Shown here: one piece after another, positions 7,091 to 50,699 of the stretch
Position numbering within the stretch: the stretch's first letter is position 1
How the letters are laid out: every line of letters starts with the position of its first letter
Source of the DNA: Paramoeba atlantica
Lineage: Eukaryota > Protista > Discosea
NCBI GenBank assembly: GCA_977017575.1
Contig: CDRNVI010000020.1
Span: 62,001 to 126,000 of the forward strand
Length of the DNA: 64,000 nt
Direction of reading: 5' to 3'
Program-made: the position numbers and the translations under genes
Notes under the pieces: model-generated
What the model was told of the DNA's origin: nothing
What the model saw: the letters and a program-made list of their open reading frames with translations, nothing else
Database searches by the model: none

Positions 7091-7453
7091 TCAGCTTTTA
7101 ACTTTCGGTACCATGAAAAAAACGAAACCTGTCAAAATGAGCAAAACATCGCTCAATTCGAGATCTAAGATTTCTTCGATTTTAGCACTGAGCTCCTCCT
7201 CAGTGATTGTAAGCGTAGGTGTGAACACAGGCACTCCTTTCGTAAAAGTTCTCTTTGTTGAAACCAGCACAGCCTTGTAGATAGCTCCTTCTGTTTCACT
7301 CGCCGAGGGACTCGCGATTCTTTCCATGAGCGCTTCGTTGCTCCCTATTTGGGACATAATGTGTTCGAAAAAATTGTGATAATTTAAGAAAATCAGAGAA
7401 ACAAATAAGTTGAATCCAGTAGTTCGAAAAAAAATTCGCAACTCATTACACAT
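7091..7453 (-). pseudogene. Truncated homolog of the element-borne orphan ORF-A (38008-38646)
   Basis: TFTKGVPVFTPTLTITEEELSAKIEE aligns with TFTKRKTPFAPPALVVTEEELGAKVEE. Confidence 0.7.
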
Positions 7454-7744
7454 GCATTATTACACTTCCACTCATACCCTAAGCGCCTTGAAAGAATAAA
7501 AAAACCAAGTATTTATTCTGTAAGCTACTATCATACCCTGGAGGTGACCTGTAGTGATCTCACTACATATGTAGTGAGTCACCACATTCACTACATTTGG
7601 TTCACTACACTCAGTACACTTTCACCACCATACGTTTTGGCTTTCACGTACCTCCTTGAATGTTCGATAAAAATTATAGTACTATAAAAACAAGAAAAGA
7701 AAGGCCCACAAAGCCCCCTTTACCCACGCCGACCACCGTCCTGC

Positions 7745-8800
7745 TCCCCTGAGGCCGCTCTCAGCATCTGAGCGCTGCCGCGTTGGATGGCGGCGCCAGT
7801 GGCCATATCATGTGCTCTGTAACCTTTTGGGTTGCCTTTTGGGTTGGAAGTTTACCGGCCCAACTTCCGCAAAAGGGAGTGTCCCGTTCCCCGGGATTCC
7901 GAAGACCGTGAAGGCTAGCTGGTAGAGGACCACCCCTCTATCGTTTGACATCTCTCCATTTTTTTAAGCTTCTCGGCTTCCGCTTTGGCGAGTGTGCAGC
8001 CTGGATTTTTGCTTTCGGCCTCCACATACGATGCGGCCAGGGGATTCACCACGGTAACGTCGATAAGAACGAGCTGACGTAGGAGGTAACAGATTTGGTA
8101 GGTAGGAGGTAGCGGAGTCGGTGGGCAATCTGCCATTCCGGTTCGGACATCATGTGTTCCGATCGATTGGGAAGTGCTTGCAGCCAGTACCGGGAGTAGA
8201 TGTTGTTGACTTGCAACAGATGAACGCACTCCGTTGCGTTTGTTGTTTCCTCTAACGCAGCATCCAGCGTCGACGTGGCGTTGCTTTTGGGCTCTGTGCT
8301 TCGGGGGTGGGTTGGGAACACGACGTTCTCTGTACATTTCGGAGTGTTGTATTCGGGTGACGCGCTTGAACTATGTAATTCCATGCAGCTCCACAGTTAC
8401 GAAAAAGAGTCAAAGCGACAGGCCTGGGTAGAGATGCTAACTTGTCAACGAATCGCTGTATTTTGGGAACTTGGTCTTCCACACATTTTTGCTCGAGGTC
8501 TGGATCCTGAGCTACGTAAGCCCCCAATAATTTCTGGCCATCGTAGCTACGTATGTGTGATCTCCGTGTCTTTGAAGGATGAGAATTGTTCCGCTTGATG
8601 TGTACTGGCATTTGACCGACTTTGGACAGCGAATTCGAAACGAAGAACCTTCATTAGTAACAACGAAGGAGAATGCATCCCGAACGTGTTCTGGGGCACC
8701 TAGGAGGGTGATATCGTCAAGGTAGGCCTTCAGTTCGATAAACGTTGACTCCTGCAAAACTTTGCCTGTTAATGAAAACCTCAACTTTCTTGATGTCATT
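7745..8800 (-). pseudogene. Frameshifted CRE-clade RT/endonuclease fragment (copy 3)
   Basis: Motifs LKAYLDDITLLG, KLLGAYV, HRLRYLLP, LIDVTVVNP and AAIQRGSAQML, spread over several frames. Confidence 0.8.
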
Positions 8801-9859: not shown

Positions 9860-10812
9860 CAGGGTTCGCAGAAACTATAAAACTATCGATATAGTACTAT
9901 ATAGTTACTATAAACTTTTTTTAAAAACTATAAAAAACTTTATTTTTTTGTTTCACATTTTAAGCACTTCTAAGCTCACCAACACGCCATAATTACACAG
10001 AGAAATCATTTGTGTACGATTTTTCTTATGTTTAAACCAGAAAATTGATGCCCGAAATTAAAGTTACGAGGGGTAGTTTCTGCAAAGATTATTTTATTGA
10101 AGTGTTGCGCACAGAGGGAAGTAAACAAGCGGTTGAATGTAACTTGTGTCAGGAGGGGACGTACCACAGTCCCATCGTGTGGCCTTGACAGATTGGGAAG
10201 AATCTTGCATCCCGAACATCTCACTGCATCGCTGTCGCCGTGCATGGGCTGGAGCCACCGACGTTATGTCTTGGGACTGAACAACTGCTGCTCACAATTC
10301 TATGAGTTTGAATAAATTTTACATCATGTTTTTCGGCGGTCATGGAACCGCGGGGAAGAGCGAGGATGTTTCGATAGCTATGTAACCCAGGCTAAAGTGG
10401 ACGAGGAAGGCTTCAAAGGCACCTTTAGTCCACCACAAAATGAAATGACATCTCCCGGTTTGTAAAGGATTCCGATGTGACAAAAGAATCTTTAAAGGAC
10501 ATACCCTTCCATTTTTGGGGTGGTTTGCCAAAGGTGCTTTTAGTATCTCCCTCGTCCACTTTAGCCTGGGTTACATTTTTTTCAGACTTCCTTGTCATAT
10601 CATACGTATGAAAGCGTGTAAGAACGCGTGTAGAGGCGTGTGTATGTCCTTCACAAGCGAAGAGGACTCAAAAAATATCACTTGTAACGTGAAAAAAACT
10701 TTATAGTTTTCTTATAGTTTTATAGTAAAATATAGTAAATATAGTACTATATAGTAACTATATTCGATAAAAAAAACTATATTTTGCTATATTATAGTTT
10801 CTGCGAACCCTG
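9860..10812. mobile_element. Non-autonomous hAT-type element (CAGGG termini, 8-bp TSD TTTAGAAG)
   Basis: Perfect 21-bp TIR CAGGGTTCGCAGAAACTATAA. TTTAGAAG occurs at 9852-9859 and 10813-10820. TATAG-rich subterminal repeats. Confidence 0.9.
10381..10575. mobile_element. 195-bp MITE (TGTAACCCAGGCTAAAGTGGACGAGG TIRs); same family as 40002-40181
   Basis: Perfect 26-bp TIR. TA on the left and TT on the right (TSD probably mutated). Confidence 0.85.
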
Positions 10813-14129: not shown

Positions 14130-14676
14130 TATGCCCTGTGACATATCAACTTGTTTAGCATTCTGTTTTTTGACGATAAGAAAAGTTGTTTTCTTGCACG
14201 AGTGTTTTCTATGGCGCACGAGTGGCCGCAGGCCACGATCCAGATATTCTTCCACCTTTACTCCTAGCTCCTCTGTGATAACGAGCGCTGGTGGGGCGAA
14301 AGGAATTTTGCGATGCAACAATGACTTCATATACGTCTTCATCGATCGCAGATGTGACCTTCATACGTGAAATAAACTATTCGTTGATCTCAACATGGCT
14401 CATTATAAATAGAATGATAATTTAAAAATGTTTATGACTGCATTATGGGGTGTATAGTAATTGTACATTTTATTTGTGCAATGCGTACGCCGTTCGTGCA
14501 TTCGCAGTAAGGGGTCTAGGTATGGCGTAAAAGAACATTCACAAGGCGCAAAAAGTTCAAAAGACCTACACTTTAAGCCACATAGCACGTGTTCATTCCA
14601 TTTTTTGGTCTAAAATAGACCTCGTTCGACCTCAAATACAAGCACGGGTTTGGTGATGCACAACTGCAGGCCCTCA
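14125..14676 (-). mobile_element. Right-end remnant of the PIF/Harbinger-ISL2EU-like element, with a decayed ORF-A
   Basis: Colinear with about 38460-38935 (shared TAAAATAGACCTCGTTCGACCTCAAAT; FAPPALVITEELGVKVEE). Degenerate TIR ending CCCTCA at 14676. Confidence 0.85.
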
Positions 14677-26216: not shown

Positions 26217-27181
26217 CAGTGAAGTATTCAAATACGAGTGGATTATAAACCCCGCGTCATGAAAAGTGACCCCCCACTTTTTTTTCGTACAAGTGTCCGT
26301 TTGAGCTGATTTTTGTTGCATTTTGCAGATCTCAACACAAGGACTTTGCGCGTGAAGAAACGAAACAAAAAGAAGCGAATACGTATATTTTATTGAAGAA
26401 TTACCATTTTTTCACTTTTTCGCCTTTCAATCTTATACACTCCTTAAGGCGTGAGTCAAAGCTTAAGACCGTTTTGTCGATCACATTTTGAGACAAGCGA
26501 GACCACGCTTTGCGTACACATCGGATGAGTGAAGGCTTATCCGATGGGGTCTGTTCGTCCACCGCCCCTTGGACCATAGATCAGACGTTTTCTATTGGGG
26601 AAAGATCTGGTGAGTTGGGGGGCCAATTTTTCAGAAGTTCACTCATTGCGCTTTCAATGTACTCCTTTGAGGCACGAGCAGTGTGTGCCGTTGCCCCATC
26701 TTGCTGAAAAATACGATTAGGGGGGAAATCTACCTCTTTTAATGTTTCTATGTACGTCTCACTTGTAATAGATGTGTCATTTTGTAGAATTACCAAGTAC
26801 CTCCACCCCACCCCTACAGCACCCCAAACTTGGCATCTTGGTGCCCAACGTACTTTTTGACGCGGGGCTGCTTTTTGACCGCGCCTTACGGTTATTTTTA
26901 ATTACGGTTATTTTTAATTAAGATTATTTTTAGCCCCGAAACAAAATACTTTTTTTCATGTCTATCACCATCGACCTCACTTTCATACGAAGCACAAACC
27001 TTTATAATATGATAACAGACGAATCCAATGGCTTAGGTGCTTAAAAGTTACTCAAAAAGTGTGTTCAAAAATTATTAATTTACGAGTGGATTATATTACG
27101 GTTAATTTAATTAAGATTAATTTTAGCCAAAAATAACCTTAAAAGCGTAATTAAATAATACCGTAATTAAATATAACACTG
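26217..27181. mobile_element. CAGTG...CACTG element with TA TSD (Tc1/pogo-type MITE) containing a partial Tc1
   Basis: TA|CAGTG and CACTG|TA termini with degenerate TIRs and an internally duplicated AT-rich interior. Confidence 0.6.
26248..26890 (-). mobile_element. 3' half of a Tc1-like element (same family as 32652-33990)
   Basis: Left TIR AACCCCGCGTCATGAAAAGTGACCCCCC after TA. Encodes QQDGATAH...WPPNSPDLSPIEN (35 residues between D and E). Confidence 0.92.
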
Positions 27182-28428
27182 TATATTACTGGGTTCCTCT
27201 TTACAGTTTCGCTGTTTTTGTTCACTTTTTTTTTTCAATAATCGAGGGTAGAGCGGTAGTTATACAACCGCCACAATTGGTACCATAATAAAGGTTTGGA
27301 CCTACGACGACTGTATGCGAGGTGACGCTTCGCGAGGATGGGATTGCAAAGTTAATCCTCGACCTCATCATTTATCGTGGTGGATGGCTTGGTGCAGATA
27401 AAACGAAATTATGTGATGAAGTAAGCTCTCGAACTGCAATCAAAACAAGGCACATAGTAAAAGTTTATGACTTTTGAACACACAGCCAACATTTTTTTTC
27501 GTACAAATTTAACAAATAACAGTTTTTTTAGCGCAAAGTACATGCTGAATGTCACGCACAACTAACTGAGGATTTCCACATGGGACATTTTTCTCCGCCG
27601 CAGTCCTCATTAACAGCAGATTATTGCCCATTTCTGCCATATTCTGCCGATCACCACAGACGCATTCCCCCCTCTAAGTTACAGGGCGGGATCAGCTTCA
27701 TCTGGGGATCTAAAGTTCGTATAACTTGGCCAATTTTAGAAAATAATAGCGCATTCAAGAGCTCTAGCATAGCTCTCTGGTGGAATATCGTTTCCCGCAT
27801 TCCTACTTAAAACGCATTTCGTCAAAAAAAATGATTTTTTGGTGTTACCAATTTTGCATTTTTTATTTTCGTTTATGGATTTTTCCTGTTTTTTCCCCTT
27901 TTATTGATCACTCATGCCCCAACGAAGGGTGCATTCGCGTTCTTCTCGAGAGAAAATCTCTGAAACCCATTTCTCACCCCCAGTAAACACAAAACTGAAA
28001 CAAAACAGAATGCTGTTAGTTGAAGATTTCGAGAAAACAGGGTAATTTTCTGAAACAGCTTTTTTTCATGTGCACGAAAGCAATGTGAAGTTGTGGGTGG
28101 AGCTGGCGAAGGTGGTTTCGTTGAACGCACATTAAAAAGTGTGCCAAACAGAATGAGGTTTGTTATAAAGAAGGAGGGGGGGGGCAACTATGGGTACTAG
28201 GTTTGTCTGCTCAATATTATGCCGAAAAGGAGAAATTTCATAAAAAACTTGCAATTGACGTTTTTCGCCCTCTTATCATTTTACGATACTGCTAATTATA
28301 CGGGAAACGATATATCTATATTCCACCAGAGGGCTATGTGAGAGCTCTCGAATGCGCTATTATTTTCCAAAATTGGCCAAGTATTAAAATTTTTAGACCC
28401 CCGCAGATCGAGCTCATCCCCCCTGTAT

Positions 28429-30665: not shown

Positions 30666-30856
30666 GGGCTTCGCAGATTGTTTCCCACTAACAACGCCGC
30701 GTATGGCTCAGGCCCGCTCACGCGGGCCCTCGCCATACCACCCCCTACGGCTTCGCAAATTGCTTCCCACTAACAACGCCGCGTGTGGCTCAGTCCCGCG
30801 CACGCGGGTCCTCGCCATACCACCCCCTATGGCTTCGCAAATTGCTTCCCACTAAC
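30666..30856. repeat. 82-bp tandem array (3 cores of GGCTTCGCAAATTGCTTCCCACTAAC); three 31-bp repeats lie upstream at about 30527-30615
   Basis: Cores at 30667, 30749 and 30831. Confidence 0.9.
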
Positions 30857-31289
30857 AACTTCGGCCGCTCGTGCGCAGTTTGAAAACACTCGTGCAAGAA
30901 AACGACTGTTCTTATCGTCAAAAAATAGCTATTTTTCTTATCTTTGCTTGTTTTTTTCTTTTCTTTGCTTGTTATTCGTGAATGTTTCCCGATTTCTACT
31001 GTTTTATTTTAATCATACAGGTGGATACTTGCAGTCAACAAAAGCAAGAGTAATAATTAACGGAATAATTTCCGTCCAAAAAAACATTCCGTTAATTCTT
31101 ATTATTGTTAATACTGTGACCCCCCTTTAATATGGACGGGGGGTATCCCCCCCCCTTTATTATGGACAAATCCGACCGGGCGCCGCGGAGGGGGGCCATA
31201 TTTTTTTGCCACTTTTTTTCGTCTTTTTCTGTTTTTTAGGGCATCTGTAGCGAGGTAATTTCGTCAGCTTACACATCACACAAAGGAGA

Positions 31290-31860
31290 AAATAGCGTCC
31301 TATCAATCCAAACACCGTCCTATCAATCCAAACACCGTCCTATCAATCACTTTTTGTGGCAATCTACACCGCGCGTTTTTTACACAGCGTATGAAAGAAG
31401 GCTTATCCGACGGAGCAAGTTCGTCCACGGCCACTTGGACCATGTACGATACATTTTCTATGGGGGAAAGATCTGGTGAATTGAGAGGGCAATTTTGTAA
31501 AATTTCTTTCATTCGGCTTTTAAGAAAGAAAAACGTACCTTTTGGACGACTCGAGACCCCCTTCTTCGGAAGCGATTTGCAAACCCCATTTTGCCACATA
31601 TGCTTTTTTCAACAGGAAGTGTGGGATACGCAAGACCGTAGAGGAAGGAGGAGGCGCAAGGCCAAAAGCAGAAGGTGGAATTGTACCCTTTCCTTTTTAA
31701 TTGATCATGAACCAAGTTGTACGTCAAGCAACCCTCTTCCTTTGTATTTTCCTTATCAACTATTGATTTCACCTTTGATACAAATCTTTTTGAAGGGTTT
31801 GGCCTACCTGATTTCAGTGGAGATGACAATTCATTACCTTGTTTTGAGAGATTAATAAAT
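31290..31860 (-). pseudogene. Internally deleted Tc1-like transposase of a second subfamily
   Basis: An N-terminal GRP/HTH-like segment ending KVRFS is joined directly to NSPDLSPIENV...DKPSFIRCVK. A 170-bp piece recurs inverted at about 40255-40420. Confidence 0.75.
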
Positions 31861-32008
31861 TTTCTAATTGTACGGCGGTCACGACCAAAGTTTTTATGAA
31901 GTTGGGTGATGCGCGACCCCCGCTAAATAGGGGGGGAAGGTGGTAGTTGTTTTGGGGAATATGAGAGGCCGAACGCACGGAGGGGCCGGCCGGGCCACTG
32001 AGTCTGAC

Positions 32009-32345
32009 GTTAGTGGGAAGCAATTTGCGAAGCCCAAATTTTCCATCATACCCGACCCCTAGAAAAGCCAAGACTTTGTTTACCCGTCTGCAAGACAAAA
32101 ATGTGTGTCGTTAGTGGGAAGCAATTTGCGAAGCCCAACCTTTCCATCATACCCAACCCCTAGAAAAGCCAAGACCTTGTTTACGCGTCTGCAAGACAAA
32201 AATGTGTGTCGTTAGTGGGAAGCAATTTGCGTAGCCCAATTTTTCCATCATACCCAATCCCTTACAAAGCCAAGACGACTGAAGCCCAACTTTTCTGACT
32301 GAGCCCAACTTTTCCACCATACCCAACCCGTAATAAAGCCAAGAC
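32009..32345. repeat. 101-bp tandem array whose 26-bp core is the reverse complement of the 30666-30856 core
   Basis: GTTAGTGGGAAGCAATTTGCG(A/T)AGCC at 32009, 32110 and 32211. Confidence 0.9.
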
Positions 32346-32651
32346 CTTTTGAAGCCCATACACGTAAAGAAAACGACATTCAATGCAAGAACGCACACGA
32401 AATGCAAATATCCAATACAAACAAGGCCCGCGCAGTTTCATAGGAAATTAGTGTTTTATGACACAATATTTGAAGGAAGAAGCCCACGCACACGAAAAGA
32501 GATTTAAGATTCCTTCGAGCTGTCCAAGAGAATTTGCGGTCGAATTTTCCGTAATTTTTGCACAAACTCAGATGGGGACTGGTCTTGGAGCACCACTTTC
32601 GGTCGAGCATTGATATTGCTGGATACGGAATCAAGGTCTGCTTGGGATATA

Positions 32652-33990
32652 AACCCCCGCTCACGAAAAGTGACCCCCCTCTTTTTTTTGGTACAAATGT
32701 CTGTTTGAGCTGATTTTTGTTGCATTTTGCAGATCTCAACACAAGGACTTTGCGCGTGAAGAAATGGGACAAAAAGAAACGAATACGCACAATTTAGAGA
32801 AGAATTACCATTTTGTCACTTTTTCGCCCTCCAATCTTATACACTCCTTAAGTCGAGAATCAAAACTTAATACTGTTTTGTCGATCACTTTTTGCGTTAA
32901 AGAAGACCATGCTTTACGTACACGTCGGATAAGTGAAGGTTTGTCCGATGGCGTTTGTTCGTCTACCGCCTCTTGGACCATAGACCAGACGTTTTCTATG
33001 GGGGAAAGGTCGGGCGAGTTGGGGGACCAGTTTCTAAAAAAATCACTCATTCGATTCTCAATATACTCTTTGGAGGCACGGGCAGTCCGTTGCCCCATCC
33101 TGTTGAAATACACTATTAGGGGGGAAATCTACCTGTTTTAGTGTTTCTATGTACGTCTTACTTGTAATAGATGTGTCATTTCGTAGAGTAACCAAATACC
33201 TCCACCCCACTCCTACAGCACCCCAAACTTGGCATCTTGGTGCCCAACGTACTTTTTGACGCGGGGCTGCTTTTTGACCGCGCTTTACCCACATGTGTCT
33301 TCTGCTATCGTTGGTATCAAATATCTTTTCGTCCGTAAAAATAACACGGGCAGTATCCAATTTGTAATTCAAAGCAAATTGAACTATTTTTTGCTTTTTG
33401 TCGTTCGGTAAGCCCTTGGCATACTGGCCGAGCGGCATAATTGTAATCCAGCGATGGTAGATCTCGCTTTACAGTGCTTTGCGAAACTTGTATACCTTTT
33501 TTACACATTTGGCCGTTTATACGCCTTGAAGAATTGAATTTTGGTACCCCAGCGGGGTCGAGAGGAGCCAATATCTTTTCAATTTTCTTTTTGCGAGATT
33601 CGATTTTTTTAATGGTCACAGGACTCAAAGTGTATTCCCCGCTACATTTTTTTTCGTTCAGATATTTTTTGATTATCCTTCTAGAGACGTTAAAATCACG
33701 GGATAATTGTTTTGTCGGAACACCATCTCCCTGTCTCATCTTCAGAAGAACCTTGCCACTATCCGTAAGCCCTCCTTTTGGGAGCCGGTATGGTGATTTG
33801 GTCATTTTTGGAAAAAAAAGTTGAAAAACCAATTATTTTTTTTGACTAATTTTTAAAATTTTAAAATGAGCTAAAAACAGCGAGAACGTACAGATCTCGA
33901 AATTTTGAACGAAAAAGTGGTATGATAACCCACCCACGCCCCCCTGTGCTAAAAATAAGGGGGGGGGTCACTTATTCGTGAGCGGGGGTT
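32652..33990 (-). mobile_element. Full-length Tc1-like DNA transposon (1339 bp, DD35E), frameshifted
   Basis: TIRs AACCCCCGCTCACGAA(T)AAGTGACCCCCC with TA TSD. Transposase in three frames: HTH region, FTDEKIF, VWGAVG, QQDGAT and NSPDLSPIENVW. Confidence 0.95.
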
Positions 33991-34672
33991 TATTACTGAA
34001 AGGATGAGACTTTGGGTAGAAATCTCTGACGACGCCGTTGAAATTTTCGACACCACCCTTTTCCCAGCTCGCGTACGGTTTACAAAAGTACGACGAGCAA
34101 TTAAGGGAACGATTTACGCTCTCGTGCTTCGCGAATTCCGTTCCATTATCATATGTGAGTGTCCGTACCAAAAAGCCTTGAAGGGCGCTGGTGATAGTCT
34201 CTGCTACAAGAGTCGATTTCTTGCATGATATCTTTTTCAGGATCCCGAAACGACTTTTGCGCTCAACAAGGGTAAGAAAGTATCCACTGTGGCGTGTACC
34301 TTCTATTAGATCACACTCCCAATCACCGTATCGTTCCCGATCGTTAACAATGCTGGGCCGCATATCAATATCTGAGGGGCTGCGGGTCGCGGGTTCGGTG
34401 CGGGTTCGGCGCGGGTTGAAAAAAATCCTCTGAAAGCATACGAAATTAGTCGGAGCTGCAGACATTGGACCCAATGCAGTCCCCGGGTGGCCCGTAGTGG
34501 ACTAAGTGGCACAAGACGACCCACAGTGGCCCATAGTGTCCCACAGTGGCCCCAAAAATCGAGCGTCGCCGGAGAATCGTGACGACATAGAGGCAAGTGA
34601 TTCTCTGATAAGTAGCGTACCTAGCTAAGTATAGTGAGGAGGCGCAACTGTATATGAGCGTAGAGTGTATGA

Positions 34673-35842
34673 TCATAGGGGGTTATTGGTTGAGTGCTGG
34701 TGGGGGGATTGTTCACGAAAAAAAACATACGCATCAAGATTTTTAGGATACGTGTATTTGTCCATCGGACCTGTGACAGTAGAACTGTCAGATACTCCAT
34801 ATCTGGAAGATTGTCCTTTGTGCTCTATTATCTTCTTTTTAACTGCTTCCACTTTCTCAGGGGTAAGAGGTGGATATCTTCCTTGAGGTCCATGTTTATG
34901 AAACACTTCCATGTTATGAACCATGAGAGCGCACGAAAAAGCATAGTAAAGAAAATCTGGACTACGAGTCCACTGCTTAAAAGCCAGCCATTTGCCACAG
35001 CACGAACGAGAAAAAATGTGTTCGACCCGCGATCTAAAGTGAGCCAACTTTTCATTGAAGCACATTTTACCATCTGCTTCTGAATCATGATGTTTCTGCA
35101 TAGACTTAGATTTTGGGCGCTTCGAACACCAAATTTTGGCTTTAGAATGGGGTACTATTAATCTATCAGTAAGACCATCGTAAAATCCCCCGTCAGCAAG
35201 AGCGCGAACACGATTGTGTGCCAGAAAATCCAGAATACCACTACAGTCCTGAATAACGGCGTCGGATGAGGCTCCACAGTGCAATGTGTCTGCTGTGAAG
35301 CAAACATACCCAGACATTGTAGATGCTACGAGCGCTTTCACGACGTGTGTAGCATATTTGGGTTGATAGCAGTGAGGCAAGCTATCAACGTACAGTGGCA
35401 CTGTGTCCATCACCACCTTTATGTCCTTATCCCAAAAAGGAAGAACTGCGTTTGATTCATGGTGCAAAATATCAGAATCCAAACAAAGCCATGTATCCTT
35501 CATATCGGAATGCAGTTTTTTAAAAAACGCGGGTATCTTGTCAGAACAAGAACGTTCAGACCAACCGGTTCCGAATTTCAAGGATATGAGTTCTGATACA
35601 ATGTCGTAGCTACCCCCACACCGCAAAAAAAGAAAGCTCGCAAAAATTTCTTCAAAGGGATAAAATTGTTTTAGAAAGGTGAGAGCGCGATGCGTTAAAC
35701 CGCATAAAGACAACTCTGAATATTTATTTTCGTAGGGAGCATCAGGTTCAGGTGCATCGCCGGATGTATCAGGTGGTGCGTCACGGGTTTCAGATATATT
35801 AACGGGTGTGTCATATTCCGGGGTGTCAATACGGCCAAGCAT
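34673..35842 (-). CDS. Apparently intact DDE transposase, IS5/PIF-Harbinger/ISL2EU superfamily (389 aa)
   Basis: VMDTVP, YQPKYATHVVK, GASSD, LADGGF, FNEKLAHFRSRVEHIF and C-terminal CALMVHN. Confidence 0.85.
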   Translation of the reverse strand: MLGRIDTPEYDTPVNISETRDAPPDTSGDAPEPDAPYENKYSELSLCGLTHRALTFLKQFYPFEEIFASFLFLRCGGSYDIVSELISLKFGTGWSERSCSDKIPAFFKKLHSDMKDTWLCLDSDILHHESNAVLPFWDKDIKVVMDTVPLYVDSLPHCYQPKYATHVVKALVASTMSGYVCFTADTLHCGASSDAVIQDCSGILDFLAHNRVRALADGGFYDGLTDRLIVPHSKAKIWCSKRPKSKSMQKHHDSEADGKMCFNEKLAHFRSRVEHIFSRSCCGKWLAFKQWTRSPDFLYYAFSCALMVHNMEVFHKHGPQGRYPPLTPEKVEAVKKKIIEHKGQSSRYGVSDSSTVTGPMDKYTYPKNLDAYVFFREQSPHQHSTNNPL

Positions 35843-36023
35843 CAGTATCAAGTAGAGGAAAGATTATTATGATTTTATTAGAGGAAAGAAAGATTCTATA
35901 TTAAATAAAATTCTTTGATTTACGATTTTTTTTCGAATTCCTTACTTCCAAATTCCTTACTTGCAACTTTTTCACTTACAACATAACCGCTTAAAACTTA
36001 CTTGCGATTTACAGGCCTACAAC

Positions 36024-36853
36024 TTACTTACGACTTTTAAAATGCAAAGTGTTCGAACTTGAAGTTGAAGCAATGCGGGAAACGCGTTGCCGCTTCGGAT
36101 TGCTGACCAGGTTTTCATCGTTCCGAACTTCAACTATCTCAACTTCCTGATCTGCGGCAGTCAAAGTTTGACGAGGAGGTCGGGCAACGTGAATAAGATG
36201 AGCATTCGAAGTCTTTCCCTTCTTGAGAATCCGCAGTTGAACAAGGTCGTCCCGGATAGAAAGAAGTTCAGTAGGAACATTCTCCTCCATTGAATTGCCA
36301 AGTTTGTCCATAATCTCACCCTGAACTTGGTGAACAAACTTTCGATCAATTTCAAATGTTGAGTCACCTAGAACTAAAACTTTAAAAAACTTGCTACCAA
36401 CGCAGTCTTTGTGTCTCTCAGAACCTTCTTTTCATTGGCGCGCTTGCCCTCATACAAGTTCCAGAGGTTTCGCAAAAACTCCTGCAGAGAGCCCCGCTCC
36501 TCTGGATGCAACGCATGGTTAAAATACGAGCAAACTGCTTCGGCCGAACGCGAGATATATCTTTTTATAGAAACATCTTTTGCCCTTTTGATAAGAATAA
36601 GGATGTGGGCCACATGTCCGAACGCAAGCTTCGTACCGCAGAGCATGCGACCCACGTACTCAGCACATGCGTTAAGAACATTTTCTTCCTTCAGACCACG
36701 AGCATAAATGTGGTCTAAGGTGTTGGCGGGAAGTCGTTCTCCATCTTGAGGGGAATTGCACAACGGACAGTAGTTTGAACCTATGAGAACTGAAACCCTG
36801 TGACACTGAATACAGGGGTCCTTTACATCGCATTCGATGGGACAGGCACACAT
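36024..36853 (-). pseudogene. Element-borne ORF-B: Cys-rich N-terminus (CxC..CxxC..CxxC), apparently interrupted; function unknown
   Basis: ORFs 36374-36853 and 36024-36311 are co-oriented with the transposase. Whether they form one gene is inferred. Confidence 0.45.
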
Positions 36854-37348
36854 TACACACGTTCAGGGGTCTCCAAGACTTACGTTACGGTCTGCTTTGC
36901 AGCGTGGACAAAACATTTTTTCCATTTTAGTAGCTTCATTACTGTGAAACGGACGTTTAATTCTAGATGTACATAGTTACTTCATTTCGTTCTATTTTAC
37001 AACTGCTGTACGTGGTCGACCAAAAATACATGAGAACGAAATCCTTACGAACTCAATATACACAACATAAAAGCAATCAAAAGGCACAACTTAAACTTTG
37101 AAGTGTCCAATCGTGGCACCGATTGTCCCATAGTGGCCCACAGTGTCCCATAGTGGCCCCAGAAATGTACCGAAGTTGCTGGGGGTCCATTGAAGGAGAA
37201 AAATAGTTAGATCGAAGGAGAAATCATAATGTGCGACATACATAGTGTACATAATATACGATAATAACAAAAATTTATAAGCCATGTATACGATATGACT
37301 ACGTAGTTTACATTTCGCAATTCATCGAAAACGACTAGATACTTAATT

Positions 37349-37720
37349 TTATTTAGTTTTTGATCCATGCTGTGGTTTCTTGGGAACATATCCCACATCG
37401 TATATGTGTTCTTTGAGCCAATCCCTCCGTTCATCAATCGGTTTGACTAAACCACACCCTTTGCTACACCAACAAAAAGATGAGTCATCGATATTTTGTA
37501 AGTGTACATTTATTTCACTATCAAAGTCGTATTGGGGTTCTGATGCAAGCAAACCATACACTGCAACAGATACAATCTGAACGGCATCCTTTACCCACGT
37601 AATATCGTGGTCCGTTCCATGAAAAAAACGAAATTTATCGAAATGAGCGAAACAACGCTCGATTCTTGAACGAATCCAAGAATGCATGCGGTTGAACCGA
37701 TCCTCTCTGGTAATGCCGTA
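37349..37720 (-). pseudogene. C-terminal fragment of a second, divergent DDE_Tnp_4-type transposase
   Basis: FNRMHSWIRSRIERCFAHF parallels FNEKLAHFRSRVEHIF. It is followed by the same CCCATAGTGG/CCCACAGTGT repeats as the intact gene. Confidence 0.7.
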
Positions 37721-38007
37721 CATGATAGAATTGCAGGATAAAATAACGCCTAGAGAGAAAACAAAAAGTAAGATGACATTCATGGGTAAGATACCTAACT
37801 TATTCATGATACATATAAGATGACATTCATGGGTAAGACACCTAACTTATTCATGATACAAGATGCATGATATCTAAAAAAAGAATGATATATAAAGGTT
37901 AGCACTTCAAACTTCAAAAAAAACGAGCTTATCACTTCTCTTGAATTACAACTCTTTTTCTCTTACGTACGCTTTGTGCGGGAAACGTTCGCTTCTGCGA
38001 GGGAAAA

Positions 38008-38646
38008 CTAAAGGGAAGGAAAGCGCATCACGCGAGAGGAACGTGGCTTCAAAGAGGCTTCCCCAAGCGAAGGTTGAGGGAGCGAGGAAGGTTGAGTGCG
38101 CAAGTTGGGTGAAGAGATCACCGTAGAAGAAAGGGATTCCTCTGCTACGTTTTCTTTACCCTGGCCACTCTTCCGTTTGCGCCACAGAGTGCATGATCTG
38201 GAACGCTTTCCTGAAACAGAACGCCACACGTTCTCCACGAACTCCCCCACAGCTCCTTCATGAGGAGGGGCGTAGAGAGGGTTCTGTTCCAAGAAAGCTT
38301 CCAGATCACGCGTCGCCTCTGCAAGGAAGTAGACCCCTCGTGGCAGACAATCCAAGAGAAGGTGTCCTCGGCGCTCCACAAGGTGGAAGATGACACGCTG
38401 CAGCACTTGGAAGCTAACCTCCACGCCACACACAGAGCGTGCGGCATCGTGCCTCATGCATTCTTCCACCTTGGCTCCCAACTCCTCCTCAGTGACAACG
38501 AGCGCTGGGGGGGCGAAAGGAGTTTTGCGCTTCGTGAAGGTGTGCATAAGCGATGCGACAATGACGTCGTATACGTCATCATCCCTCGCAGATGTTACCT
38601 TCATACGTGAAGTGAAATCTTCGTTGCTCTCAACAGGGCTCATCAT
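38008..38646 (-). CDS. Element-borne orphan ORF-A (212 aa)
   Basis: First gene inside the right TIR. Homologous remnants at 7091-7453 and 14124-14342. Confidence 0.65.
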   Translation of the reverse strand: MMSPVESNEDFTSRMKVTSARDDDVYDVIVASLMHTFTKRKTPFAPPALVVTEEELGAKVEECMRHDAARSVCGVEVSFQVLQRVIFHLVERRGHLLLDCLPRGVYFLAEATRDLEAFLEQNPLYAPPHEGAVGEFVENVWRSVSGKRSRSCTLWRKRKSGQGKENVAEESLSSTVISSPNLRTQPSSLPQPSLGEASLKPRSSRVMRFPSL

Positions 38647-39423
38647 ATAAAAAGGAGGATAATGTAAAAGAATTATGCATGTATTGTGGAGGGTATATTA
38701 ATTGTACATTTGATTTGTGTAATGCATACACCGTTCGTATACAGCACCGTATACAGCGTACACCGTATTTTCACAGTAAGGCGGCTATGTACGGTAACAA
38801 ACTAAAAAAACTACACTTTAAGCTACTTTGTACGTGTACAATCCATTTTTTTGGGGCTAAAATAGACCTCGTTCGACCTCAAATGCAAAGCGCGGGTTCG
38901 GTGCGGGTTCGGTGATGCACACCCGCAGCCCCTCATCTGTACGATTAGGGATGCTGGTACGATTAGTTCCACGACGACGGCGTTGTCCACTAATTCCCCC
39001 CCGACGGAGGCAACTCTCCAAGTTTTGACTCTTATTCCGACTAATAGAACCATAAATTGCCTTCCGGGAAATGCTCACACCTTCTTTACGCAAAGTAACA
39101 GATATCTGTTGAGGGCTAAAGCGCCGACGTAACAGAGATATGACACTCTCTTTGATGTCTCCTTCAATTTTGCTTGCACGGGACTTCCGTTTACTCATTG
39201 CTTGGTTGAGTGTTCGTTCAGCCCGCTTCGCGTTGTATACACCATCCCGATCTCCACCTGCCAGTTCTCGACTAAAAGACGACTGATTTACTTTCAGTTT
39301 TGAGGCAATTTGTGCTTGCGAAAAGTTTTCTTGATTGTGGAGAACCTCAATAAGTTTACGATCTTCTGAATTAATACGTTTTCTAGATGTTTGACACATG
39401 GTGCAAGAAAGACAAAAAAAATA

Positions 39424-39709
39424 TTATCCGGTTACATTATGCATTATCAGGTTACATTATGCGTTATCAGGTTACATTATGCGTTATGAGGTTACATTAC
39501 GCGTTATCGGGTTACATTATGCATTATAAGGGTGCGAGTTACTATGCATTATAAGGGTGCGAGTTTTATGCGTTATCAAGGGTACAATATGCATTATTAG
39601 TGGCCCTATATGCATTATCAAGGGTACAATATGCGTTATCAAGGGTACAATATGCGTTATCAAGGGTACAATATGCGTCATCAGGTTACATTATGCATTA
39701 TAAGGGTGC
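39424..39709. repeat. Tandem 20-25-bp array (GGTTACATTATGCGTTATCA and variants) immediately upstream of the IS30 start codon
   Basis: About 13 units in three variant classes. Confidence 0.95.
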
Positions 39710-39930
39710 GTGTGCCGGGCACACTTCTGTCCATGGGTGTATAATGTATTTCTCTAATCATTGCTTTGCTGTGGGCTCTTTTTGTTATATTTGTCTTGTC
39801 CTTTGTCTTGTTACTCTCATTGATCTCTTAAGAAAAGATTGTATAAGACTCGTAAAAATTAGTGAAGTAATTTGCTTTCAAAAACTTCCTGCACTAATTA
39901 ATATTATGCCTCAATTTTTACGCGCACGGT

Positions 39931-40001: not shown

Positions 40002-40181
40002 AGGGTAAAGGGGACGAGGGAGATACCAACAGTGTAGGGGCGGCAGTTTCCACAGGAAAAACGGCATCTCTACCTTTTTAGTCGCTTGTCTTTATGCCAT
40101 AGGGGAGATACCGTTTTTCCTGTGGAAACTGCCGCACCTACACTGTTGGTATCTCCCTCGTCCACTTTACCCTGGGTTACA
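40002..40181. mobile_element. Fold-back MITE (about 69-bp arms, 3 mismatches), TGTAACC family, left tip lost
   Basis: Arms at 40002-40070 and about 40105-40173. The right end GGGTTACA|TA matches 10381-10575. Confidence 0.85.
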
Positions 40182-40254: not shown

Positions 40255-40420
40255 CAGAAGGCTCCGCCTTCTGCTTTTTGCCTTGCGCCTCCTCCTTCCT
40301 CTACGGTCTTGCGTATCCTAAATTTCAAGTTGAAAAAAGCATACGTGGCAAATCGGGCTTTGCAAATCGCTTCCGAAGAAGGGGGTCTCGAGTCGTCCAA
40401 AAGGTGCGTTTTTCTTTTCT
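40255..40420 (+). pseudogene. Fragment of the second Tc1 subfamily
   Basis: Near-identical to 31510-31680 in the opposite orientation (PCASSFLYGLAYP...RVVQKVRFS). Confidence 0.75.
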
Positions 40421-40552
40421 AAAACTATCTATTTATAGAGCTGCCTTTCGTTCTTTGCGAAAAAACATTTTCCGGAAAATCTTTTTTCGGGCTAAATTTC
40501 GGGCGAAATTTCGAGCCAATTTTTATTAATACTGGGTAGCGAGGGAGTAGTA

Positions 40553-42567
40553 CACACATGTGCATAGTACGGTACGATGTACTAAATCTAGTACGGACCC
40601 CTATTTTCGTACTAGTACGTACTAACTACCGTACTATCCGTACTAGGATAGTAAACGTATTCAAAAACTTGGTGTAGGTATCTCTCGCTCGCTTGTTAGC
40701 TTGCTATTCTGAAAGCAAATATTTTGAGCGAGAGGGATGTTAGTTACATGGAGAACGAGTCGGGAAGGGATGAAGAGTTCTGTCCGGGAATCTAATTTGT
40801 ACAGCGGGGGGGATTTTACTTACATGGAGAACGAGTCCAGAAGGGGTAAGAAGTTAAAATTTAATGGAAGTGTTCTTCACTGTGTGGTAAGTCTTCACTG
40901 CCTTGGTAGTACAACTCCCGGGACCTTGTGCACTGATCAATTTCATACATGAATATACAGTGTATGTGTTTAGAAAGATTGACCATCCGCATATTTATAT
41001 AACTTTATTGTCTCTAAGGCTTTCAACAACACCCTTTTCTAGGCCTGGGCGATAGCGTTTGAGGCAGCGCTCCCCGAACCTACTGTAGTACGTCCGAAAA
41101 TTGGACGACGCTCTTACGAAGGACTCGTCACATTTAGCTAATTTCATCCCGAGCGCTACACCTTTGTACTTCCCTTTTGAAGCACTAGGTTTCCCGGCAG
41201 AATAAAAGGCTTGAGAGAAATTAGCTTTCTTAAATTTAAAAGAAGCAGACTCTTCGTACGACTTGAAAGCTGCCTTACAAACGCAATTGATCATGTGACC
41301 TATACATGACAAAAACGTAATGGTGGGAAACGCAAAACGTAAGCCTTGCTCAAAGTTCAACAGATCATCTTGGCCAACACCATCAGTCCGATCATAAATT
41401 TCGCGCAGATGACCCTCGCAATGCAACCGGGCAACATGGTTAACTGTACTGCCGTCGACCATGAGAAATTTTAGTTTTTTTTGTCGATCAGCTCCGATGT
41501 TAATCATTAAGCTGCTAATGAAAGTCTCGGCCATGAGTTTTCCATCGAACGCCTTGTGTTGAGATGAATAAAGTGGTGGAAGAACATATTCTTCAGCCCC
41601 CACATATAAGATGCACAAGAGCAAATGTTCACTCTTTACCCGATCAATACCTGCATCTACCGCTGCACCAAAAAAACGTGATTATCGATGTGGTCTCGAA
41701 GAACCCCCCATAATTCATTTGCCTGAACGGACTCGCATTCATGAAGTTTTCGAGTTGTCTTAGGAAAAAATGCAAGAAATTGTGCGGCAGTCACGTTAGG
41801 AGGCCACTGCTCCAAAAAAGAGTGAACAAAAGTGATAAATTGCTGTGATGGTGTGCTCATAAGAGCGTGCATACATGGAACTACCCGCGTTGCGTACACC
41901 TCCGCATTTTGCCGCACTGTTATCGTGCTGTTTCGTTCCTCCTCTTCCATTCGAACAGTCCCAAGATCACATTCCTTTCTGTGTCGTTGGTAGTGATTTC
42001 GAGTCTTACTGTAAGACTAAAAATCTAAGTCTCTACATAGAATTTCTACGTAGAACGCGTAGAATTCTACGTAGACTACCAACTATGCTTACAGTGAGTC
42101 TCAAACTCACACCCAGGGGAAACACATTTGTAGTGACACTGATGCCCCATCCCATCCAAGGGCATTTCGCTGTGATCGTGGTGGCAATTAGGGGGACACC
42201 GAACGACCTCGAATTTCGGTACGGCGCCCTCACGCATCAAAAGGCTGGGCGGCGCACGTTGTTGACTGCGAGGCGTCGAAGGCGTGGAATTTCCTTGCGA
42301 GTTTTGACTCATGTAAGGACACAAAAAAAGTAGGGCGAATATCACTAGTATCTATTATCTATCTATTTTCATGTTACAGTAAGAAAAAACCCGATATTAC
42401 AAGTAAAAGAGAAAGTGAACTTACATACATGTATGGTACTCTTTGTCTATGTATAATATTCTTTGAAAAAAAGGAAATATGTACATGTGACTAAAAGTAC
42501 AGACTTTCGTACTAAGTACGGATAGTACGGTACTAGGTACGGTACTATCGTACTAGGCAAATGTGTG
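40553..42567 (-). mobile_element. Decayed hAT-like (CxxH-group) DNA transposon with CACACAT termini and an apparent 6-bp TSD GTAGTA
   Basis: TIR CACACAT(G/T)TGC(A/C)TAGTACG and GTAC-rich subterminal arrays. The frameshifted transposase has FFGAAVDAGID, FLMVDGS, SCIGHMIN and YSRFG. Confidence 0.75.
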
Positions 42568-42726
42568 GTAGTATCTCCCTCAATAAAATTTCATAGTTAT
42601 TCGGACCCCTGGCTTGTAAGTAGCTTACGTAGTAGCTTCACACAAAAACAACTCTCCACAAACTTCCAAATCCTTTTTTCTCTCTCACATTCACTCCACC
42701 CTCCCTTCTTTCCCTCCTCCTCCTCT

Positions 42727-44406
42727 ATGCCTTCCCCCACCCCCTCTCTTCGCCTACGCCCCCATCCCACCCTCCCCTCCCCCTCCGGCCCCCTCCTCCT
42801 CGTCATCCTAGACGGTGTCGGGGTCGGTCCCGGGGACGCCTACGATGCCATCCACCTCGCCTCCACCCCCACCCTCGACCGTCTCCTCGCCCACCCCACC
42901 CGTAGCACTACCGTAAAAGCCCACGGGGTCGCTGTCGGTCTCCCCTCCGACAACGACATGGGGAACAGCGAGGTCGGGCACAACACCATGGGTTGTGGCC
43001 GCGTGATCCCACAGGGGGCGACCCTGGTGAACCACGCCCTCACCCACGGCACCCTGTGGCACAGTCACGGGTACGACCACTTAAGAGTCGCCTTCCAAGC
43101 CCCCGGGGCCACACTCCACCTGATCGGTCTCCTCAGCGATGGCGGTGTGCACAGTCACACGAGACATCTGTACGCTCTACTCCGACAGGCCCACGCGGAT
43201 GGGGCCACGAAGCTGCGGCTCCATGTGTTGTTTGACGGACGGGACGTGCCCGACCACACCGCGGAGAGCTACACGGAGGAACTCGAGGAGGTGCTGCGGG
43301 AGTTCCCGGATGCCAAGATCGCCTCCGGTGGGGGGCGGATGTATGTCACCATGGACCGGTATGAGGCGGATTGGGGGATTGTGCAGCGTGGGTGGGATGC
43401 CCACGTGCATGGGAACGCGCGGGCGTTTGGGAGTGTCCCGGAGGCTCTGGAGACATTTCGAAGGGAGAATGCGGCGAGTTCGGATCAGTACCTGCCTCCG
43501 TTTTGTGTGACGAATGAGGAAGGACCGGTGGGGCGGATTCAGGATGGGGATGCGGTGCTGTGTTTTAACTTTCGAGGAGATCGGGTACTGGAATTGTGTC
43601 GGACGTTCTCCAGCGATGCCTCCTTTGATAAGTTTGACCGTGGTGTAGTCCCGAAGGTCCACTTCGCGGGTATGATGCAGTATGATGGGGATATGCGTAT
43701 CCCGGAGTACTACTGTGTTCCCCCTCCGTTGATCGAGCGCTCCAGTGGGGCGTACCTCGCGGCCAGCGGGGTGCGTCTGCTTGCGTGCAGCGAGACTCAA
43801 AAGTTTGGTCACGTGACATATTTTTGGAACGGCAACCGGAGTGGGAAATTCTCGGCTGATTTGGAGACGTACGTAGAAATCCCAAGTGACTGTTGTGTGT
43901 TTAACGAAAAGCCCACAATGAAGGCGGCGGAAATTTGTGGTGTTGCCGTCAACGCGCTACGAAGCGGGAAATACGATCTTGTGCGAATTAATTTTGCGAA
44001 TGGTGACATGGTGGGGCATACGGGAGACATGGCTGCCACCGTGGCAGCGATGGAGACCGTTGACAAGGTATTGCATGAGCTTCTTGACTGTGTCGAGGAG
44101 GTAAAAGGCTCCTTTCTTATCACTGCTGACCATGGCAATGCAGACGACATGGTTCAGAGGAACTCGGATGGTACTCCAAAGATGTATCCGAATACCGACA
44201 AGGTTATTCCGCTTACGTCACACACTCTTGCGCCCGTGCCTGTCCTGATTGGGGGACCGGCACTACCTGATTTTGTCTCATTGAGAGGCAACCTCGAGAA
44301 AGCGGGACTTGCAAACATCACAGCTACCTTCATAGAGATGCTCGGATTTGAAGCCCCTGAAGATTATGAATCTTCATTGCTAAACCTTAAAAAGCCTTCT
44401 GAGTAG
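42727..44406 (+). CDS. iPGM: 2,3-bisphosphoglycerate-independent phosphoglycerate mutase (trypanosomatid/plant type)
   Basis: LDGVG, DMGNSEVGH, LLSDGGVHSH, DGRDVP, GGGRM..TMDRYEADW, ETQKFGHVTYFWNGNRSG, NGDMVGHTG, TADHGN and TSHT. Confidence 0.98.
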   Translation: MPSPTPSLRLRPHPTLPSPSGPLLLVILDGVGVGPGDAYDAIHLASTPTLDRLLAHPTRSTTVKAHGVAVGLPSDNDMGNSEVGHNTMGCGRVIPQGATLVNHALTHGTLWHSHGYDHLRVAFQAPGATLHLIGLLSDGGVHSHTRHLYALLRQAHADGATKLRLHVLFDGRDVPDHTAESYTEELEEVLREFPDAKIASGGGRMYVTMDRYEADWGIVQRGWDAHVHGNARAFGSVPEALETFRRENAASSDQYLPPFCVTNEEGPVGRIQDGDAVLCFNFRGDRVLELCRTFSSDASFDKFDRGVVPKVHFAGMMQYDGDMRIPEYYCVPPPLIERSSGAYLAASGVRLLACSETQKFGHVTYFWNGNRSGKFSADLETYVEIPSDCCVFNEKPTMKAAEICGVAVNALRSGKYDLVRINFANGDMVGHTGDMAATVAAMETVDKVLHELLDCVEEVKGSFLITADHGNADDMVQRNSDGTPKMYPNTDKVIPLTSHTLAPVPVLIGGPALPDFVSLRGNLEKAGLANITATFIEMLGFEAPEDYESSLLNLKKPSE

Positions 44407-49097: not shown

Positions 49098-50699
49098 ATG
49101 CAACCCGGCTTTGTCCAATCCCCCAACGACGTCCTCCGTCTCGGGGCCACCGAAGAAAAAGGCGAGCACGCGAAACTCTCCAACATCATGGGTGCCATCA
49201 GCGTAGCGGAGGTCGTGAAATCCACACTCGGGCCTAAGGGGATGGATAAGATTCTCCAAAGCACCGACCGGGGCGCAGGCGTGCGTGTCACCAACGACGG
49301 GGCCACCATTCTTCGCTCGCTTCATATCGACAACCCCGCAGCGAAGCTTTTAATCGACACCTCAAAAGCGCAGGACGAGGAGGTCGGGGATGGCACCACG
49401 AGCGTCACGGTACTTGCCGGGGAGCTGCTACGACGCGCCGAGCGTCTCCTCCTTGAACAGTCCATCCACCCCCAGACCGTAATCGAGGGGTTTCGCATCG
49501 CCGCCTCCGTGGCAGGGGACGCGCTGAAGAGTGCCGCAAAGGATAACGCAGACAATGAGGAAAAGTTTCGTGAGGATTTACTCCGCATTGCCCGCACGAC
49601 ACTCAGCTCCAAAGTGGTGTCACTCGCCAAGGAGCATTTCGCCCAGCTCTGTGTGGACGCGGTGCTGCGACTGAAAGGGTCGAACAACTTAGAGATGATT
49701 AATGTGATCAAATCCCTCGGGGGCACGCTGACGGATTCCTATCTCGAGCCTGGGTTCCTGCTGGAGAAGAAAGTGGGGATGGGACAACCCCGGGTGCTGG
49801 AGGAGGCAAAAATTATGGTCGCCAACACCTCAATGGATGCGGACAAGATTAAGGTTTTCGGGGCTAAGGTACAGGTGGAGAGCGTCAGTGCCTTGGCGGA
49901 AATCGAAAAAGCAGAGAAGCAGAAAATGAAGAACAAGGTAGATAAGATTCTAGCGCACGGCATTCATTGCTTTATTAACCGTCAGCTGATTTACAACTAC
50001 CCCGAGGAGCTTTTCGCCCAGGCAGGGGTGATGGCGATCGAGCACGCGGACTTTGAGGGCGTGGAGCGACTCGCCAAGGCTCTGGGCGCGGACGTGTGCT
50101 CCACCTTTGATAACACCGAGGGGGTAACGTACGGCTTTGCCAAGCGGATTGATGAGGTTATGATTGGGGAGGACACGGTAATCCGATTCAGTGGGCTACG
50201 TGCGGGGGAGGCGTGCACGGTGGTCTTGCGGGGCACCTCACAGCATATTTTGGATGAAGCTGAGCGCTCTATTCATGATGCGCTGTGTGTGCTGTGTCAA
50301 ACCGTACAAAGCACGAAAACTGTCTTGGGCGCCGGGGCCAGTGAGATGCTCATGTCAACAGCGGTGGAGAGCGAGGCACGGCGAACTCCAGGGAAGAAAG
50401 CACTCGCAATGGATGCTTTTGCGGAGGCGCTGCGAATGCTACCGATGATTATTGCGGAGAATGCGGGTCTGGATAGTACGGAACTCATAACGAAACTTCG
50501 CGCCGCCCACACAGAGGGTCGACACAACATGGGACTGGACATCCAAACAGGCGACATTGCGGACGTGATGGAATCAGGTATCTTGGAGTGCTACAAAGTG
50601 AAGGACAGTGTGTTGCGTCTCGCGGCCGAGGCGGCCGAAGTGTTGCTGCGGGTAGACACTGTCATGCGTGCCACTCCCCGTCAACGATCAGATTATTAA
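49098..50699 (+). CDS. CCT2: T-complex protein 1 subunit beta
   Basis: [57 protein letters not shown] and [13 protein letters not shown]. Confidence 0.97.

Follow-up and report, generated by a model that had tools for sequence, protein, structure and literature searches.

A stretch of 64,000 nucleotides from an assembly filed under Paramoeba atlantica (GCA_977017575.1, contig CDRNVI010000020.1, positions 62,001 to 126,000; hereafter the window) carries on its minus strand a transposase gene of the bacterial insertion sequence (IS) family IS30, broken into three pieces by two other transposons. We consider it very probable that this gene belongs to a dead copy of a nuclear DNA-transposon family that resides in a kinetoplastid-lineage protist and uses a transposase of the bacterial IS30 family. 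With somewhat less confidence, we also regard it as probable that IS30 has founded a true eukaryotic transposon lineage here, which was started by one transfer from a Verrucomicrobiota-like bacterium, propagated itself, split into several subfamilies and replaced its inverted repeats (IRs) with inverted arrays of binding sites. Some of its copies may be mobile.

The original prediction, which was made from the letters of the window, placed the gene on three minus-strand segments and claimed that removal of the two inserts restores an in-frame open reading frame (ORF) with the hallmarks of IS30. Each part of this description was confirmed. The segments lie where they were predicted, the junction peptides are correct, and a join of the pieces by script yields 990 nt and 329 amino acids with no stop codon except the terminal one. 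The core piece (126 amino acids) alone scores 155.5 bits against the NCBIfam model NF033563, "IS30 family transposase" (cutoff 80), and the N-terminal piece contributes 44 more bits. Because the model positions covered by piece 1 (1-117) and piece 2 (120-247) are contiguous over the break, the two pieces are joined at a natural junction. Pfam identifies rve in piece 2 and the helix-turn-helix (HTH) domains HTH_38 (E 8.7e-6) and HTH_32 (E 8.9e-7) in piece 1, both slightly below their gathering scores, as is likewise the case in the bacterial relatives. All of the listed motifs occur in the joined protein, namely GDWECD, TYDNGTEF, PYASWEKGGVENFNG with the D-33-E spacing, and NINARPK. The catalytic aspartate-aspartate-glutamate (DDE) triad runs from GDWECD over 53 residues to YDNGTEF and over another 33 residues to the E of VENFNG; in an alignment of 12 proteins that includes bacterial IS30, D175 and D229 never vary and E263 hardly does. 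A C-terminal tail of 10-12 amino acids, RKxRPQxLxDSSQES, is kept in the protist copies, whereas the bacterial relatives do not have it. Judged by these sequence features, the transposase genuinely belongs to the bacterial IS30 family. A search of the PDB sequences returned no solved structure of the IS30 type.

According to tblastn, the window contains no second IS30 copy. However, when the core piece was searched against 1.8 billion representative proteins, the window's own ORF was returned together with graded relatives at 95, 73, 70 and 58% identity and lower. The 90% cluster of the window ORF includes an intact protein of 330 amino acids, P0151, encoded at positions 5976-6968 of L001, a 64.7-kb contig of the ENA assembly ERZ24900291. 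Its gene has neither of the two inserts, and it is 98% identical to the joined window gene at the amino acid level and 98.4% identical at the nucleotide level. A search for uninterrupted copies had been proposed as a check, and P0151 is such a copy in the same assembly. The nucleotide divergence of 1.6% from an intact copy indicates, as far as sequence can tell, that the subfamily of the window copy is fairly young. With full-length P0151 as the query, eight more 90% clusters from the same assembly were found at 56-96% identity. The assembly holds at least nine diverged copies, and these represent at least five subfamilies that are approximately 55-77% identical in amino acid sequence and have unrelated flanks.

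The intact copies define the architecture of the full element, which is 2.1-2.5 kb long (approximately 2.3 kb in L001, 5560-7884; 2.1 kb in L002, 7722-9799; and 2.5 kb in L005, 4811-7334). Each element has one transposase gene for 318-340 amino acids, with the layout HTH-HTH-DD(33)E, and approximately 1.1-1.5 kb of each full copy consists of non-coding repeats. In L001, the terminus CACACGCACCCTTAT at 5560 is followed by an array of ~20-25-bp repeats that extends to ~25 nt before the ATG, the gene, a unique 3′ stretch, ~100-bp repeats, a palindrome of ~85 bp (7441-7510), a spacer, and an inverted array at 7701-7884 that ends in the inverted terminal motif. Both ends of the element are inverted arrays of ~20-25-bp units (L001 5560-5941/7701-7884; L002 7722-7972/9586-9799; L005 4811-4975/7285-7334). 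Each unit repeats the terminal motif (CACNCGCACCCTTAT...), which is reiterated approximately 8-19 times in arrays of 180-400 bp. The motif is common to six element ends, and the boundaries at this motif are sharp, with differing flanks, in the window, L001, L005 and L006. In two further subfamilies, L003 and L013, a subfamily-specific form of the array immediately precedes the ATG, and each subfamily possesses its own co-varying terminal repeat unit. A gene call at 8222-9214 of L005 was considered as a second IS30, but it proved not to be IS30.

A pyrimidine-rich leader precedes the ATG in five subfamilies, and an AG acceptor lies between the leader and the ATG only in L003. The original prediction had interpreted the leader and the tandem array upstream of it as adaptations to the eukaryote. 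The array is real, because the window segment 39424-39707 contains 11 pattern matches compared with 0.01 expected by chance. However, the same array is mirrored at the 3′ end of the intact copies; therefore, it represents the element's own 5′ end and not a promoter-like adaptation. The leader is indeed common to the five subfamilies and may act as an expression signal in the eukaryote, possibly in trans-splicing.

The two inserts in the window gene are of eukaryotic type. The smaller insert has inverted ends of ~41 nt and TA on both flanks. These features, together with a DDE_3-type transposase, are those of Tc1/mariner elements, although the DDE_3 match is weak (E 1.8e-4, below the cutoff) and lies in a decayed ORF. 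The larger insert is bounded by 13-14-bp ends (GAGGGGCTGCGGGT) and is flanked by duplicated (C)AGAT, 4-5 bp, at 38935-38939 and 34370-34374; its ORF of 392 amino acids matches PF13359 DDE_Tnp_4 at 38.7 bits (cutoff 24.8). The DDE_Tnp_4 domain and the short terminal inverted repeats (TIRs) would fit the PIF/Harbinger-ISL2EU group, but in that group the target-site duplication is usually 2-3 bp. This insert also contains at least three additional ORFs (212, 159 and 152 amino acids) with no Pfam match. Both inserts have relatives in the window, at 26240-26889 (87.6%) and as a fragment at 31315-31527 for the Tc1-like element and at 14310-14655 (76.5%) for the Harbinger-like element.

Neither insert is present in L001. 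The window aligns with this contig in three blocks (39707-38935 with L001 5652-6440, 34374-33991 with 6436-6819, and 32651-32109 with 6818-7376), and the adjoining blocks overlap by exactly CAGAT and exactly TA. Therefore, L001 is an exact empty site for both insertions. The transposase gene was intact when the Tc1-like element inserted at TA and the Harbinger-like element inserted at (C)AGAT, and the order of activity is the IS30 element first and the other two later. The claim that the IS30 gene was hit by two eukaryote-type transposons with relatives in the window is thus borne out by the relatives as well as by the empty site. As a separate observation, Tc1-like elements occur repeatedly in or beside IS30 elements, not only in the window gene but also at L012 3700-4000 and L013 1430-2587; in L012, a Tc1-like end takes the place of the 5′ array immediately before the transposase gene.

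At first glance, an IS30 gene in a protist assembly suggests bacterial contamination or an assembly chimera, in which the IS30 of a co-cultured bacterium has been joined to protist DNA. The transposase is unmistakably bacterial in type, all of the copies come from a single culture or holobiont assembly, and the short-read contigs are so fragmented that they do not link the element to host genes. However, two transposons with relatives elsewhere in the window sit inside the gene, and kinetoplastid-type genes lie within 3 kb of it on the same contig. Intronless plus-strand genes in the window encode iPGM (42565-44406) and CCT-beta (49098-50699), as well as DAGAT, a MatE transporter and an RNase T-type exonuclease; neither Rfam nor a tRNA scan gave any match in the window. 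Against PDB 3nvl and 3igy, which we take to be the enzymes of Trypanosoma brucei and Leishmania mexicana, respectively, the iPGM reaches 726 and 696 bits, whereas its score against bacterial iPGM is 306 bits. The CCT-beta is 95% identical to a Paramoeba atlantica transcript (MMETSP0151), 73% identical to Prokinetoplastina PhM-4, 72% identical to Perkinsela sp. CCAP 1560/4 and ~70% identical to trypanosomatids. By the evidence of such genes, the host is a kinetoplastid-lineage protist, and the genome may come from a kinetoplastid living with or in a Paramoeba amoeba.

Other copies are also placed among eukaryotic genes, with L002 located between genes for kinesin, PIG-P and HSP90. The GC content at third codon positions (GC3) of the IS30 copies is 0.41-0.50, which is within the range of the host genes, compared with 0.61 for the nearest bacterial element, and even the best bacterial match reaches only 45% full-length identity (57-58% over the core). 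In addition, the sequence recurs in three other runs from the same study. Parts of the stretch are found in four runs of one study, and at five diagnostic sites the contigs of these runs show the L001-type variant. The original prediction had argued against contamination, and the nested resident transposons, the flanking genes and the host-like GC3 agree with that argument. Because the nested insertions have exact empty sites and the flanking genes are of kinetoplastid type, we consider contamination to be excluded for practical purposes, with a negligible residual probability.

Regarding the origin of the family, the bacterial IS30 proteins that rank below the protist clusters are 45-47% identical, and the named ones come from metagenome-assembled genomes (MAGs) of Verrucomicrobiota/Akkermansiaceae. 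In a maximum-likelihood tree of 84 proteins (quick search, midpoint-rooted), the nine protist rows form one clade (Shimodaira-Hasegawa-like approximate likelihood ratio test, SH-aLRT, 100; stem 0.69) that contains no bacterial row and is sister, with a support of 96, to a clade with Akkermansiaceae/Verrucomicrobiota IS30. A phylogeny had been suggested as a check, and this tree groups the protist copies beside Verrucomicrobiota IS30. The bacterial relative, which was found in three bacterial contexts, is a compact IS of ~1.2 kb with plain ~25-bp IRs and no arrays. Because the protist copies form one clade and have derived traits in common (the arrays, the pyrimidine leader and the C-terminal tail), a single transfer followed by propagation within the eukaryote would fit these sequences. 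Several independent bacterial transfers might instead explain the diversity of the copies, given that the divergence between subfamilies is deep, with saturated synonymous sites, that the protist is likely to encounter many bacteria, and that metagenomes are rich in the donor clade. Such a history, however, does not agree with the single protist clade or with traits that are common to the subfamilies and missing from the bacterial relative, and we regard it as improbable.

Between subfamilies, the synonymous divergence (dS) is saturated (>2), the nonsynonymous divergence (dN) is 0.14-0.15, and dN/dS is ~0.07. Because dS is saturated and dN is low, the protein was under purifying selection during the diversification of the family. 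For the window copy and L001, dN/dS is 0.22 on 16 substitutions. These values are relevant to the possibility that a one-off transfer never transposed in the eukaryote and that its copies arose from segmental duplication only, similar to a rotifer IS5-like element. Several copies are fragmentary (P0002, P0004 and P0237), no IS30 insertion polymorphism was found among the loci compared, and the runs are of DNA type only, all of which is in line with a one-off event. However, purifying selection has acted across the subfamilies, of which there are at least five with unrelated flanks, co-varying repeat units of their own and inverted arrays at both ends, and the copies in the window, L001, L005 and L006 have sharp ends at a common motif within different flanks. 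We therefore give a transfer without transposition little credence.

Strong purifying selection would also be expected if the intact relatives were domesticated host genes and the window copy a pseudogene, and the intact ORF of L002 is co-oriented with a host gene cluster. Nevertheless, the genes are contained in bounded units with inverted terminal arrays, they occupy non-syntenic sites in many copies, and broken copies are common. P0182, which has lost the catalytic E, also lacks the arrays, a combination that fits decay rather than domestication. The chance that these are domesticated genes appears to us to be very slight.

The reading that we prefer, a self-propagating eukaryotic transposon family of IS30 origin, implies a mechanism of several steps. 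A single transfer from a bacterium to the protist would have been followed by a long period in which the transposase kept the family multiplying in the eukaryote. The repeated terminal motif would be recognised by the N-terminal HTH domains, and the arrays would represent multiplied putative binding sites. The ends of foldback-like, CACTA and Ac/Ds-type elements likewise consist of many short inverted repeats, which are presumed to be multiple transposase-binding sites; their layout is similar and their transposases are unrelated, and by analogy the repeats of the protist family may be bound in the same manner. The DDE core would move the element by the IS30-type route, through joined ends or a circle and subsequent integration, and transcription could be provided by host polycistronic read-through.

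Several points weigh against this reading. Every eukaryotic copy comes from one assembly and one study. The position of the protist clade within bacterial IS30 depends on the root, which was placed at the midpoint of a quick tree. With sequencing runs of DNA type only found for the stretch, expression of the transposase in the protist is a prediction from the gene sequence. None of the loci compared shows an empty or polymorphic site for an IS30 insertion. The two most similar copies are 1.6% apart, and present mobility is only putative. The target duplication differs between readings: the flanks of L005 are GG/GG, within a G run, whereas those of L001 are GG/GC, or ATT/ATT if the ends are placed 2 nt further out. 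These two complete copies were the ones available for the comparison. GG also occurs beside single ends in the window and L006, which suggests a 2-bp target duplication at GG; for L001, a 3-bp ATT duplication would be a possible reading. Bacterial IS30 elements make a short duplication of 2-3 bp. Finally, P0182 (L004 3102-4124, 340 amino acids) does not have the catalytic E, because K-R replaces the E-N of VENFNG. It has no terminal arrays and is either decaying or has been put to another use.

The window copy also bears a third lesion in addition to the two insertions. In a three-way alignment, its homology to L001 and L002 ends at 31911, which is the centre of the internal palindrome. The sequence of L001 at 7512-7884 has no match anywhere in the window, and no minus-orientation (inverted) array units were found there that might represent the missing 3′ array. 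The copy is therefore truncated on its 3′ side by approximately 410 bp, including the inverted array and the terminus, and abuts a Tc1-like remnant. The original prediction had stated that there were no other lesions, and in this respect it was mistaken. Because the gene is split and the 3′ end is lost, the window copy is a dead relic that no longer makes transposase and could not be moved as a complete element. The coordinates of its parts are collected in Table 1.

Table 1. Parts of the IS30-derived copy in the window and the two transposons inserted in it.
Feature	Position	Strand	Remarks
Element 5′ end	39400..39716	minus	Terminus CACACGCACCCTTAT starts at 39714; aligns to L001 5560-5975
5′ terminal array, ~13 units of ~20 bp	39424-39707	minus	
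T-rich leader	39400-39423	minus	
Transposase piece 1, aa 1-155	39399..38935	minus	N-terminal HTH domains and basic RRRR patch; 95% nt identity with L001
Harbinger-like (DDE_Tnp_4) insert, 4.56 kb	34374/34375-38934	minus	Splits the gene after codon 155
Transposase piece 2, aa 156-281 (126 aa)	34369..33992	minus	DDE catalytic core (GDWECD, YDNGTEF, SWEKGGVENFNG); 99% nt identity with L001
Tc1-like insert, 1339 bp	32652-33990	minus	ORFs decayed, frameshifted; TA at 33991-33992 and 32650-32651
Transposase piece 3, aa 282-329 (48 aa and stop)	32650..32507, stop to 32504	minus	C-terminal tail RKIRPQILLDSS.ES
Internal 3′ region	32008..32503	minus	Aligns to L001 6969-7382 at 95%
Internal 3′ region, unique stretch	32277-32503	minus	
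Internal 3′ region, 2.7 copies of a 101-bp repeat	32008-32276	minus	
Last kept part	31911..32007	minus	Unique segment and left arm of the internal palindrome

The protist element retains the core properties of bacterial IS30, for which the nearest sampled examples are elements from Akkermansiaceae/Verrucomicrobiota MAGs (e.g., the P0005/P0153 cluster). Both belong to NF033563, with HTH_38/HTH_32, a DD(33)E triad and a single transposase gene, and both have the motifs SWEKGxxENxNG and NxRP(R/K). However, a bacterial IS30 is ~1.0-1.25 kb long, its gene fills nearly the whole length, it ends in a single pair of IRs of ~20-30 bp, and its host is a prokaryote. In contrast, the protist family resides in a eukaryotic chromosome, is approximately twice as long at 2.1-2.5 kb, and ends in inverted arrays of 180-400 bp, to which ~100-bp internal repeats, a palindrome, the pyrimidine-rich leader and the C-terminal tail of 10-12 amino acids have been added.

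According to Gilbert and Cordaux (2013; PMC3673617), a comparison of representatives of all 24 IS families with 430 eukaryote genomes retained only IS607-like sequences, and these authors attribute the rarity of IS transfer to transcriptional or transposase incompatibility. The eukaryotic IS607-like elements are likewise prokaryotic ISs that lie beside eukaryotic genes in nuclear genomes after horizontal transfer. However, they encode a serine recombinase and are mostly fragments in low copy number (PMC3673617), whereas the protist family is of the DDE type. A closer parallel in enzyme type is the IS5-like element of the bdelloid rotifer Adineta vaga, the one other case that PMC3673617 cites (Gladyshev and Arkhipova, 2009), which is also a DDE-type bacterial IS in a eukaryotic chromosome. 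As described in that citation, the rotifer element is single-copy and transcriptionally silent, whereas the protist family is multi-copy, has several subfamilies and has remodelled its ends. Ginger and other integrase-like eukaryotic transposons (PMC2836005) have a DDE enzyme of the integrase/IS3/IS481/IS30 grouping and are likewise cut-and-paste elements. However, Ginger is Gypsy-integrase-like and ancient in eukaryotes, whereas the protist enzyme passes the bacterial IS30 model and branches beside living bacterial IS30; in the Ginger paper, IS30 is named only as a distant bacterial relative of integrases (PMC2836005).

The first DNA transposons of kinetoplastids, Merlin elements in Bodo saltans and Perkinsela, were reported in 2021 in a group long thought to contain retrotransposons only (PMC8101967). 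Their copies have neither TIRs nor target-site duplications and look ancient, whereas the IS30-derived, Tc1-like and Harbinger-like elements of the window have clear ends and are nested. These elements add to the evidence for a rich class II transposon fauna in early-branching kinetoplastids. IS30 goes unmentioned in a broad survey of eukaryotic DDE transposons, as do transposases in a 2026 preprint on the genomes of free-living kinetoplastids. The original prediction knew of no described eukaryotic IS30 superfamily, and we likewise found none in the searchable literature, a scope that leaves out Repbase and subscription-only papers. The family is an unusual IS30 variant that lives as a eukaryotic transposon and is apparently undescribed.

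Transfer of bacterial ISs to eukaryotes is very rare, and here a DDE-type IS appears to have entered a eukaryote, proliferated, diversified under selection and rebuilt its ends. If this is true, IS30 would be the first bacterial IS family of the DDE type observed to have made this transition recently enough to be traced. It would provide a traceable example of the change from a prokaryotic IS to a eukaryotic superfamily, a change that for Tc1/mariner, Merlin, Mutator and PIF/Harbinger is known only by inference. To this picture, the window copy contributes the nested insertions with their exact empty sites, the relative order of activity, and the centre of the palindrome as a breakpoint.

The palindrome centre has served as a breakpoint twice. 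At 31911 in the window, the left arm runs into unrelated DNA, and at L006 4232-4320, a truncated transposase gene directly adjoins the right half. The internal palindrome resembles two inverted ends that abut each other and may be prone to breakage or recombination. Three subfamilies have in common, at 98% identity, a segment of ~180-200 bp with the palindrome inside it (L001 7380-7555, L002 9325-9530 and L005 6953-7127; 31911-32034 in the window), while the transposases of these subfamilies are only 55-67% identical and their silent sites are saturated. Recent exchange or gene conversion is a possible cause, as is a separate small mobile module lodged in the elements; extreme constraint is unlikely.

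Repeats of other types surround the window copy. Two inverted arms of 162 nt (31518-31679 and 40263-40424, 91% identity) bracket the IS30 region and were considered as the TIRs of the element. They were rejected because the intact copies place the end at 39716; the arms are flanking repeats outside the element. The arms have the sequence GGAAGCxATTTGCxAA in common with the 101-bp repeats of the internal 3′ region and with an 82-bp array of opposite orientation at 30667-30859. The 5′ flank contains a near-perfect hairpin at 40002-40173, with arms of 69 nt that are 96% complementary and a loop of 34 nt. This hairpin has a very high summed contig depth in all of the runs and partial copies at 6500-6566, 10378-10576 and 27212-27277, and it is probably a high-copy foldback or miniature inverted-repeat transposable element (MITE)-like repeat. 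At the start of the window, an ORF of 901 amino acids at 1098-3803 contains an RVT_1 domain (72.9 bits) and marks a retroelement.

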